Below, in pieces: positions 43,301-44,617 of a stretch of DNA of 64,000 bases; the first letter of the stretch is position 1, and each line of letters starts with the position of its first letter. The position numbers and the translations under genes were made by a program. Below the pieces are notes generated by a model, which did not search any database, had not been told where the DNA came from, and saw only the letters and a list, made by a program, of their open reading frames with translations. Origin of the DNA: Mytilus trossulus. Its lineage: Eukaryota. The stretch lies in NCBI RefSeq assembly GCF_036588685.1, contig NC_086375.1, forward strand, positions 38,130,001-38,194,000, read 5' to 3'.

Positions 43301-44617
43301 ACTATATATCATTTGAAATTCATTTCCTTTGACTATATCATTACAGAATCCTCTTATTCGTCTTATTGTTGCTTTGTTTTTGTATTGAATATTTTTGAAA
43401 TGTTTGCCACTGGACGATACATGTTAAAGTAAACAACAATGTGATTTCCCACACTAGGGTATAGCATACCATGAATATTTATAGATGTTTTTTTTTTTAT
43501 GACTTTTTGGACTACTACTTGAAAGTGAGGGTAAATTGTGTGGGAACAGAAAATCAATATTTCCAACAGGTCCACTTGCACAAATAACTGTTGCAAGGCG
43601 GTCTATTTTTAACGCGCAGAAACCGCAGTGCGTCCATCTATTTTAAACGAGGAATCGGATTCAACCGACCCCATTCTGACTGACGTGGCTGTGTACTTTT
43701 ACATCCCTCATAATCCAACAGGCGACCCAATTTGACACTAGTTTAACTCACGGACTGACAGTCGAAAGAGAGACGAAAGTGCCCATATATCTATTCCTCA
43801 GTCACCCTAGGGATCTAATCCTTTAAAGTTGAAAGCCTGACATTGCAAAGGAAGTATACCGCCCCTTTCCTTTGACTGACACATGAGACTAGCAGCTGCA
43901 AATAATGTGTCTAGCGACAAATTCAAGAGTCAAGCTACGCTAAAGTGGTTGACCTAATTTTTTTGAAATATAAAGTAACTTACTGATAAACCTGTTCTCC
44001 TTTAAACTCTCCATATTCTTCTTTTAAGATCGAAGACATTTCACTTTCTGTAAAAAGCCAAAACACAATGTGTTACTCACTATATATACACATACAACAC
44101 TTGTTTTATTTACTCGATGTTTGCAGTATGATATCCTATACCGAATAACAATTATGACGACCTTGTACTATTAGCATTATAGTTTACAAAACTTGAAGAT
44201 TTTTTAAAATGATAAATAGAGAATTTGCACTTGCATTAAGCATTGACCTTTCACGAGACTGTGAAATTACTATCATTATTTTAAATTTGGATTCAGATGA
44301 GTGATTGATCGAAACAAGTATAGATATCAAATGGATAAATTATAGCTTCGTGTTTAAATGTTTTCTCAGAATTATAAGTTTGAATTCTAACGGACTGCAT
44401 AACATTTGTCTTGTCTTACTGTAGAATAGAAGTGACCTTGTTATCTAAGAATATGTATCTATAAAAAGATTTGTAAATAATAACACAAGCTTTACTTACC
44501 TGGACAGTTAGTCCCCCTGGCGGCAAGGTATATAACTACAGCAAGTAATGCAATAATGACTACTGTCACAAAACATAAAATCATACATATATTCCGACGG
44601 TTGTCTTTTCGAGCCAT
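37338..44617 (-). CDS. GALM: Aldose 1-epimerase (galactose mutarotase), 9 coding exons, 383 aa including a 42-aa N-terminal signal-anchor extension (341 aa from internal Met at 44039)
   Basis: Exons 5'->3': 44617-44500, 44047-43984, 43003-42873, 42307-42153, 40928-40719, 39948-39867, 39174-39030, 38313-38145, 37415-37338. GT-AG, consistent phases, 1152 nt. Motifs: [41 protein letters not shown] (catalytic His), [27 protein letters not shown] (catalytic Glu), [12 protein letters not shown]. Exons 2-9 are secure; the coding status of exon 1 is inferred. Confidence 0.93.
41024..41290. mobile_element. Tc1/mariner-like MITE (CAG termini, TA TSD) in GALM intron 4
   Basis: ~80-bp imperfect TIR CAGCCGATT...AACCGTGAAGTCATTA, with TA on both sides. 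Confidence 0.8.
41375..41885 (-). mobile_element. Two adjacent Helentron/HINE-like copies in GALM intron 4
   Basis: Two similar units begin CAAGAATG (41377, 41603) and share the TTTGGCATTAAAATTAGA..AAGTTTCAA core. They end in (GACG/GAAC)n microsatellite. Confidence 0.6.

Follow-up and report, generated by a model that had tools for sequence, protein, structure and literature searches.

Is the galactose mutarotase (GALM) encoded in a 64-kb stretch of Mytilus trossulus DNA an ordinary cytosolic enzyme, or is it made with an N-terminal membrane anchor? In animals, GALM carries out the opening step of the Leloir pathway in the cytosol, and its gene is the one mutated in type IV galactosemia. The stretch analyzed here (the window; contig NC_086375.1) has a GALM gene on the minus strand, and a first-pass annotation had proposed that this gene begins with an exon encoding a type II signal anchor, placed in phase ahead of a complete catalytic domain. 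We found that transcripts contain this exon, joined in frame to the next one, that an in-frame stop codon lies ahead of its ATG, and that homologous exons precede GALM in many other bivalves. The best explanation, and in our view a probable one, is that the gene encodes a type II anchored mutarotase acting in the lumen or at the cell surface, with one gene serving two compartments beside two cytosolic paralogs.

Structure of the gene and of its first exon

The GALM model was assembled exon by exon. It has nine exons and 1152 nt including the stop codon, encoding 383 amino acids followed by the stop. AG and GT flank the exons at all internal boundaries, and the phases agree. The features are listed below in window coordinates.

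44618..44714, minus strand: 5' untranslated region (UTR) of the anchored transcript, minimum extent, from the 5' ends of transcript contigs; contains an in-frame TGA and an upstream open reading frame (uORF)
44500..44617, minus strand: coding exon 1, the putative signal-anchor exon, from sequence, tblastn homology and alignment; single copy in the genome
44048..44499, minus strand: intron 1, 452 nt, phase 1, GT..AG; 44047 joined to 44500 in four runs
43984..44047, minus strand: exon 2, with the end of the stalk (E-S-E) and the ancestral GALM start Met (ATG 44039); 44047 joined to 44500 and 43003 joined to 43984
42873..43003, minus strand: exon 3, from transcript joints and the model
42153..42307, minus strand: exon 4, with YANRIA, NALHGG and the NYT sequon; from joints, the model and a PF01263 exon match of 62.7 bits
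40719..40928, minus strand: exon 5, with the catalytic His and the NTT sequon; from joints, the model and a PF01263 exon match of 65.8 bits
39867..39948, minus strand: exon 6, from homology and in-phase AG/GT boundaries
39030..39174, minus strand: exon 7, with GYDHCYCF; from homology and in-phase AG/GT boundaries
38145..38313, minus strand: exon 8, with the catalytic Glu; from homology, boundaries and a PF01263 exon match of 34 bits
37338..37415, minus strand: coding part of exon 9, ending in TSYKFGLV and a TGA stop; from homology and boundaries

Exon 1 is 118 nt long, with its ATG (44617) in the context ataATGg and a G/gtaagt donor at 44500. Exon 2 has the acceptor ttacag/AAAGTGAAATG at 44047 and a gtaagt donor after 43984. 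The codon split between the two exons (G+AA) specifies Glu, and the frame runs on to 43984. The coordinates, frame and signals given in the first-pass annotation (exon 44617-44500, ataATGG start, G/gtaagt donor, in-phase splice) were all accurate. It had also read F-R-Y after exon 2 by following the open frame, and this needs correction: the codon at that junction is split as CA+A and the residues are Q-Y-T-L-Q.

The ATG at 44617 is the first in the transcript to open a long reading frame, and its context is strong (A at -3, G at +4). The frame is closed by a TGA 15 codons upstream (44662-44660). Ahead of this start codon the transcribed leader has a single ATG, at 44709, and it begins a three-codon uORF (ATG GTT GAC TAA; 44709-44698, minus strand).

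Transcripts join exon 1 to exon 2

We aligned Logan contigs to positions 40300-46200, using sequencing runs X1, X2, X3 and X5, which come from four studies of one organism. In each run, one contig joins 44047 to 44500 and skips the 452 nt between them. The skipped segment reads CT..AC on the plus strand, which is GT..AG on the strand of the gene. Transcripts across this junction, which had been named as a check on the anchored form, are thus present in four runs from four studies. Single contigs from X1 (1350 nt) and X2 (1336 nt) extend from the 5' UTR through exons 1-5 and beyond, and the joints between 43003 and 43984, 42306 and 42872, and 40928 and 42153 were seen in all four runs. The contigs begin at 44641 (X1), 44714 (X2), 44669 (X3) and 44708 (X5), and no additional exon was found upstream of exon 1 in the contigs that carry it in these runs.

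A retrocopy was considered as the source of the spliced contigs and rejected, because the exon 1 peptide is encoded once in the 1.3 Gb genome, in which the only PF01263 loci are three that contain introns. Given contigs that skip introns and the exclusion of a retrocopy, the joints must come from spliced RNA.

The contigs seen at this locus are the anchored ones plus one unspliced contig of 110 nt (44026-44135, from X5, depth 3.8) that reads across the boundary between intron 1 and exon 2. It has six mismatches and a 2-nt gap within the intron part. This contig may represent pre-mRNA, perhaps from the other allele, or a transcription start inside intron 1 that would give an unanchored form beginning at Met 44039.

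The exon 1 peptide has the layout of a signal anchor

The peptide encoded by exon 1 consists of a basic tail (MARKDNRRN), 24 hydrophobic uncharged residues, and RGTNCP, followed by the first base of the Glu codon. The maximum Kyte-Doolittle mean over 19 residues of the hydrophobic core is 3.32. We compared this value with those of all 285 ATG-started open stretches of 39 codons on both strands of the window, which is 33% GC. The anchor exon was the only one with a mean of at least 3.0, indicating that AT-rich codons do not account for its hydrophobicity. The net charge is +3 in the N-terminal flank and approximately 0 in the C-terminal flank (RGTNCP, then ESEMSSILK). The protein therefore has a single N-terminal hydrophobic segment of bilayer-spanning length, with the more positive flank on its N-terminal side, as in type II signal anchors. 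The proposed layout is borne out by the basic tail, the 24-residue span and the flank charges.

The anchor exon is conserved among bivalves

An exhaustive search with exon 5 returned one animal-type match (P0039) with a tail-helix-stalk N-terminus, and a member of the same cluster (P0151, 407 aa) was full length. We searched with P0151 and read the N-termini of the matches. The anchored GALM proteins found were as follows.

Sinanodonta woodiana: 391 aa (P0191), with an N-terminus almost superimposable on the peptide of the window
Magallana gigas: isoform X1, XP_011448800; UniProt K1PI52
Crassostrea virginica: isoform X1, XP_078316291
Ostrea edulis: isoform X10
Saccostrea cucullata: isoform X1
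Pecten maximus, Argopecten irradians and Mizuhopecten yessoensis (scallops): isoform X1 in each
Mactra antiquata
Ruditapes philippinarum: isoform X1, XP_060585604
Several unnamed transcript assemblies

In tblastn searches, the anchors of Sinanodonta (P0191) and an oyster (P0197) matched positions 44614-44504 of the window (E = 1e-4 and 8e-4, respectively, in a small local database) and nothing else. The anchor exons are homologous across Palaeoheterodonta, Pteriomorphia and Imparidentia, and by tblastn and alignment the exon of the window lies, as in its homologs, directly 5' of the ancestral start Met. Identity of the catalytic-domain exons with the models from Sinanodonta and oyster is 57-77%. 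By homology, this locus is the ortholog of bivalve gene models that already exist in RefSeq and UniProt and have gone unremarked.

A local alignment of 15 anchors showed which features are retained. The hydrophobic run is exactly 24 residues long in 11 of them. The boundaries recur, with R-N-x-C before the helix and V-I-Y-L-A followed by R or K after it; an acidic stalk and the ancestral M-x-I-T start come next. Net charge ranges from +1 to +4 in the N-terminal flank and from -3 to +2 in the C-terminal flank. A Cys is present in the stalk of eight of the 15 proteins. Ten have a juxtamembrane Cys in one alignment column, on the predicted cytosolic side, and most of the others have it one or two positions away; as a speculation, this residue would suit palmitoylation.

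A maximum-likelihood tree has anchored forms in all bivalve sub-clades, and the unanchored entries adjacent to them are alternative isoforms. A raw count on the tree gave nine changes of state. Repeated independent gains of the anchor were considered on this account and rejected, because the unanchored neighbors are isoforms X2 or X3 of the same genes and the anchors can be aligned with one another. One ancestral anchor exon with alternative 5' exons is the sensible reading of these sequences. The first-pass annotation had described the anchor as something that GALM gains here, and it had proposed a tblastn search of other molluscs for N-extended forms. Our protein searches turned up anchored orthologs in many bivalves, including models such as XP_011448800 and K1PI52, and the idea of a local novelty has to be dropped. 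On these alignments, the anchor is an old variant present in all major autobranch bivalve lineages and not a one-off gain in this genome.

We saw no trace of such an anchor in the sampled gastropods Haliotis, Lottia and Littorina. A search of 5.8 billion sequences with the anchor region alone (residues 1-60 of P0191) returned only the query; a region this short cannot reach significance, and the result is uninformative on distribution.

Short unanchored isoforms are annotated for several orthologs (M. gigas X2/X3, C. virginica X2, Argopecten X2, Mizuhopecten X2 and Ruditapes X2), and these either use a different first exon or begin at the ancestral Met. Because oyster, scallop and Ruditapes orthologs have such isoforms, a cytosolic isoform from Met 44039 is plausible at this locus too. 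The same data raise the possibility that exon 1 is simply 5' UTR that happens to be open, in which case translation would begin at Met 44039 and yield an ordinary cytosolic GALM. Retention of the ancestral Met in exon 2, the short isoforms annotated from it in relatives, and the closest transcript cluster (P0219, placed among the pteriomorphs in the tree) would all be in keeping with this: contigs of that cluster from a close relative, although of transcript size (1295-1370 nt), encode only the short form of 336-338 aa. However, ATG 44617 is the first ATG of a long reading frame, in a strong context and downstream of an in-frame stop, and only one of the 285 comparable open stretches is so hydrophobic. 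A frame that was not conserved in relatives would have spoken for a UTR; instead, distant bivalves keep the peptide together with its length and charge pattern. We therefore consider an untranslated exon 1 very improbable.

The catalytic domain

The PF01263 profile matched three segments of the gene exon by exon (40701-40931, 65.8 bits; 42162-42326, 62.7 bits; 38130-38315, 34 bits; cut-off 27 bits). The sugar-binding motifs YANRIA and NALHGG are encoded in exon 4 and GYDHCYCF in exon 7, and the sugar-binding positions (ANRI, LHGG, FDH) are invariant among 18 anchored proteins. Exons 5 and 8 contain the catalytic His and Glu motifs, respectively, as the first-pass annotation had stated. Through the ortholog P0191, these align with NLTNHSYFNL and GFCLETQNWPD of human GALM (1SNZ), in which we take His176 and Glu307 (human numbering) to be the catalytic acid/base pair. 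From its motifs and alignments, the catalytic domain is intact.

The best match of the anchored Sinanodonta ortholog in the PDB is human GALM (1SNZ, E = 3e-100), over the whole catalytic domain. The alignment begins at human residue 5, which corresponds to residue 50 of the ortholog, just past the equivalent of the ancestral Met, so that approximately the first 49 residues of the anchored protein appear to be an addition. An AlphaFold2 model of the ortholog, with the anchored family as its alignment, is in agreement: it has a 28-residue helix at residues 8-35 (mean pLDDT of 84 and 91 in ten-residue blocks), a disordered stalk of low confidence at residues 37-46, and a beta-sandwich from residue 50.

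Other GALM genes and GALM-like proteins

PF01263 matches in the genome fall in three intron-containing loci, namely the locus in the window and two others on the same contig, at approximately 61.606-61.618 Mb and 77.764-77.770 Mb. Both of these look intact. By relaxed tblastn, their first coding exons encode MSTEVNISSEKFGKTNDGQDIK (61.61 Mb) and MSTVNILEEDFGKTKDGLSVKR (77.77 Mb), each preceded by an in-frame stop, at distances of 6 and 24 codons, and the proteins begin at a plain Met (MSTEVNISSEKFGK and MSTVNILEEDFGK, respectively) without an anchor exon. No anchor-like exon was found near the two paralogs or elsewhere in the genome by tblastn and a genome-wide peptide search. The separate unanchored, presumably cytosolic GALM that was expected alongside the anchored one is thus represented by two genes.

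Three metagenome proteins, presumed bacterial (P0220, P0222 and P0223), have N-termini of the signal-peptide or lipoprotein type, are 51-55% identical to the bivalve protein P0151, and attach beside the bivalve clade in the tree. They are about as near to P0151 as the gastropod GALMs are, and their closeness may reflect sampling bias, as they were picked as best matches, together with high conservation. Short hydrophobic N-termini that resemble signal peptides but have no relationship with the bivalve anchor are found on two other GALM-like proteins, one from a leafhopper (P0114, Homalodisca vitripennis, KAG8287137) and one from a land snail (P0209, Bradybaena similaris), which may be cases of independent secretory routing. 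Double-length GALMs were also found (P0001, 701 aa; P0171, 725 aa; P0152, Littorina saxatilis XP_070180462, 673 aa). The exon 5 query matches P0001 twice, at different places, indicating a tandem double-domain protein.

Topology and possible role

The N-terminal flank is more positive than the C-terminal flank, and the positive-inside rule accordingly predicts a type II topology in which the N-terminus stays in the cytosol and the catalytic domain is luminal or extracellular. The length and hydrophobicity of the helix appear to exceed those of a cleaved signal peptide. The segment is probably retained, given its 24-residue length, the lack of a conserved small-x-small motif at the helix end in the aligned anchors, and the conservation of the helix sequence itself.

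If the segment were nevertheless a cleavable signal peptide, the product would be a soluble secreted mutarotase of the digestive lumen, crystalline style or haemolymph. Its N-terminal position, its basic n-region and the small residues (A-A, A-T, A-V) near its end would fit such a signal, and precedents can be seen in the signal-bearing secreted GALM homologs of oomycetes and plants and in the many database matches with bacterial-type signal or lipoprotein N-termini. Cleaved signals, however, usually have h-regions of about 7-15 residues, compared to the 24-residue hydrophobic run found in 11 of 15 lineages here. Position -3, where a cleavage motif would have a small residue, is Leu or Ile in most of the proteins, and conservation across bivalve orders would be unusual for a peptide that is discarded. 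Secretion of a cleaved form seems quite unlikely to us.

It is also conceivable that the helix tethers the enzyme to a membrane while the catalytic domain stays in the cytosol, whether the helix inserts N-out or holds the protein at the surface of an organelle. GALM, the enzyme that begins the Leloir pathway, would thereby be concentrated at a membrane, for example at a sugar exporter or at the Golgi machinery that handles uridine diphosphate (UDP)-galactose. Such an arrangement would suit a catalytic domain identical to that of the cytosolic isoforms, with a universal N-L-T sequon beside the catalytic His, and a basic residue immediately after the helix in most orthologs. A functional association of cytosolic UDP-Gal enzymes with Golgi membrane proteins has been proposed (PMC11994309). 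On the other hand, the stalk is acidic and, with few exceptions among the orthologs, the N-terminal flank is the more positive one, which by the charge-difference rule indicates N-in, C-out insertion. Mitochondrial outer-membrane anchors are moderately hydrophobic, and anchors inserted into the endoplasmic reticulum (ER) through the signal recognition particle (SRP) are more so; the value of 3.3 fits the latter. The Cys in the stalk and the higher sequon counts also lean toward a luminal domain. We regard a cytosolic catalytic domain as unlikely.

The sequon counts need some care. Because all GALMs, cytosolic ones included, have the NLT sequon, it is uninformative on compartment, and the NYT and NTT sequons noted at this locus are common to only some orthologs. 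Products of anchored genes have a mean of 4.4 sequons, compared to 2.4 in never-anchored proteins. Together with the stalk Cys, this is a weak hint of luminal exposure.

Several points weigh against a luminal or surface mutarotase. The sequon and Cys counts are small and not phylogenetically independent, and the counts for anchored proteins include the anchor region itself. As judged from the short isoforms, the domain apparently also works in the cytosol, and it has no clear adaptation to an oxidizing, glycosylating compartment. Glycosylation of the universal N-L-T sequon, which adjoins the catalytic His, could be harmful. With respect to the transcripts, the runs are labeled only 'RNA? (a guess)', and their RNA nature was deduced from the contigs that skip introns. 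In X3 and X5, the contig that joins exons 1 and 2 has a lower word depth than the contig that joins exons 2 and 3; contig depth is not quantitative, and the difference could reflect other 5' ends.

In the type II arrangement that we favor, SRP and Sec61 would insert the helix as an uncleaved signal anchor, leaving the N-terminus in the cytosol; the catalytic beta-sandwich would then lie within the lumen of secretory or endolysosomal compartments or at the cell surface. In this position the enzyme would speed the interconversion of the alpha and beta anomers of free galactose and glucose, beside glycosidases and anomer-selective transporters. The enzyme may then serve digestion or uptake. The same gene would supply a second compartment with an unanchored form, made by using another first exon or by starting at the ancestral Met, and the two purely cytosolic paralogs would work alongside it.

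It is possible, though we would put it somewhat below an even chance, that a single gene gives autobranch bivalves both a cytosolic mutarotase and a luminal or cell-surface one, and that they have retained the latter over several hundred million years. If so, enzymatic interconversion of anomers outside the cytosol would limit sugar digestion or uptake in an animal, with digestive-gland endolysosomes and the sugar-absorbing epithelia of gill or gut as possible sites, and bivalves would offer a natural test system for the old idea that links mutarotase to sugar transport. One gene with two first exons would make it tractable to ask whether spontaneous mutarotation limits sugar uptake, or digestion coupled to glycosidases, in a filter feeder. 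A luminal or outward-facing domain would make this the first GALM of its kind in animals, parallel to the secreted mutarotases of oomycetes and plants; a cytosolic domain would still make this a new case of a membrane-tethered Leloir enzyme. In either case, an interesting isoform has stood unremarked in RefSeq models for years.

Other features of the window

The intron between exons 4 and 5 contains a segment (41285-41875) that is matched by hundreds of RNA contigs at 90-95% identity, with a summed word depth of up to ~6e4. Joints within these contigs ('goes back 225', 'skips 253-271') point to a high-copy repeat made of tandem units and transcribed from many loci. Neighboring genes are unrelated to GALM. 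Reading frames at 55528-58474 on the plus strand match the profiles for EF-Tu GTP-binding, EF-G domain 2/III and RF3-C and appear to be exons of a translational-GTPase (EF-G-like) gene, and a weak match to a VWDE-like immunoglobulin domain lies at 2423-2815 on the minus strand.

Comparison with known systems

The closest counterparts of this gene are the bivalve isoform X1 models, with which it shares a homologous anchor exon before the ancestral Met, the length of the hydrophobic run, the boundary motifs and the charge asymmetry. It differs from them in that an unanchored isoform is annotated at several of those loci, whereas the spliced contigs that show a 5' end here, in four runs, are anchored. 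These GALM entries are automated models for which we found no published functional description. Our literature searches likewise found no published membrane-anchored or secreted animal GALM, and no localization or expression data for the bivalve protein.

Human GALM (1SNZ) has the same fold, belongs to the same family and shares the catalytic His (NLTNH) and Glu (CLE/ALE-x-Q) motifs, but it is soluble and cytosolic and has no N-terminal extension. The type II enzymes of the brush border and Golgi, such as sucrase-isomaltase and glycosyltransferases, share the architecture of basic tail, single N-terminal span, stalk and catalytic domain. They are not homologous to the bivalve protein, in which the stalk is very short (~10-15 residues) and the topology is a prediction.

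Members of the aldose 1-epimerase family have been sent into the secretory pathway in other kingdoms. Phytophthora sojae AEP1 is reported to be an apoplastic secreted aldose 1-epimerase, and the plant protein NbAELP (gp40) has a signal sequence and was found in membrane and cell-wall fractions (PMC5622589). Both carry signal sequences and are reported as secreted or cell-wall proteins, with no reported equivalent of the conserved 24-residue anchor. They are independent acquisitions, and we liken them to the bivalve GALM by description and not by sequence. A recent study of anomer preference in GLUT transporters argued that mutarotation, when left to occur spontaneously, cannot keep pace with rapid transport (PMC12903842). 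The secreted precedents in the family and the slowness of spontaneous mutarotation together favor a mutarotase that would act outside the cytosol, in the lumen or at the cell surface.

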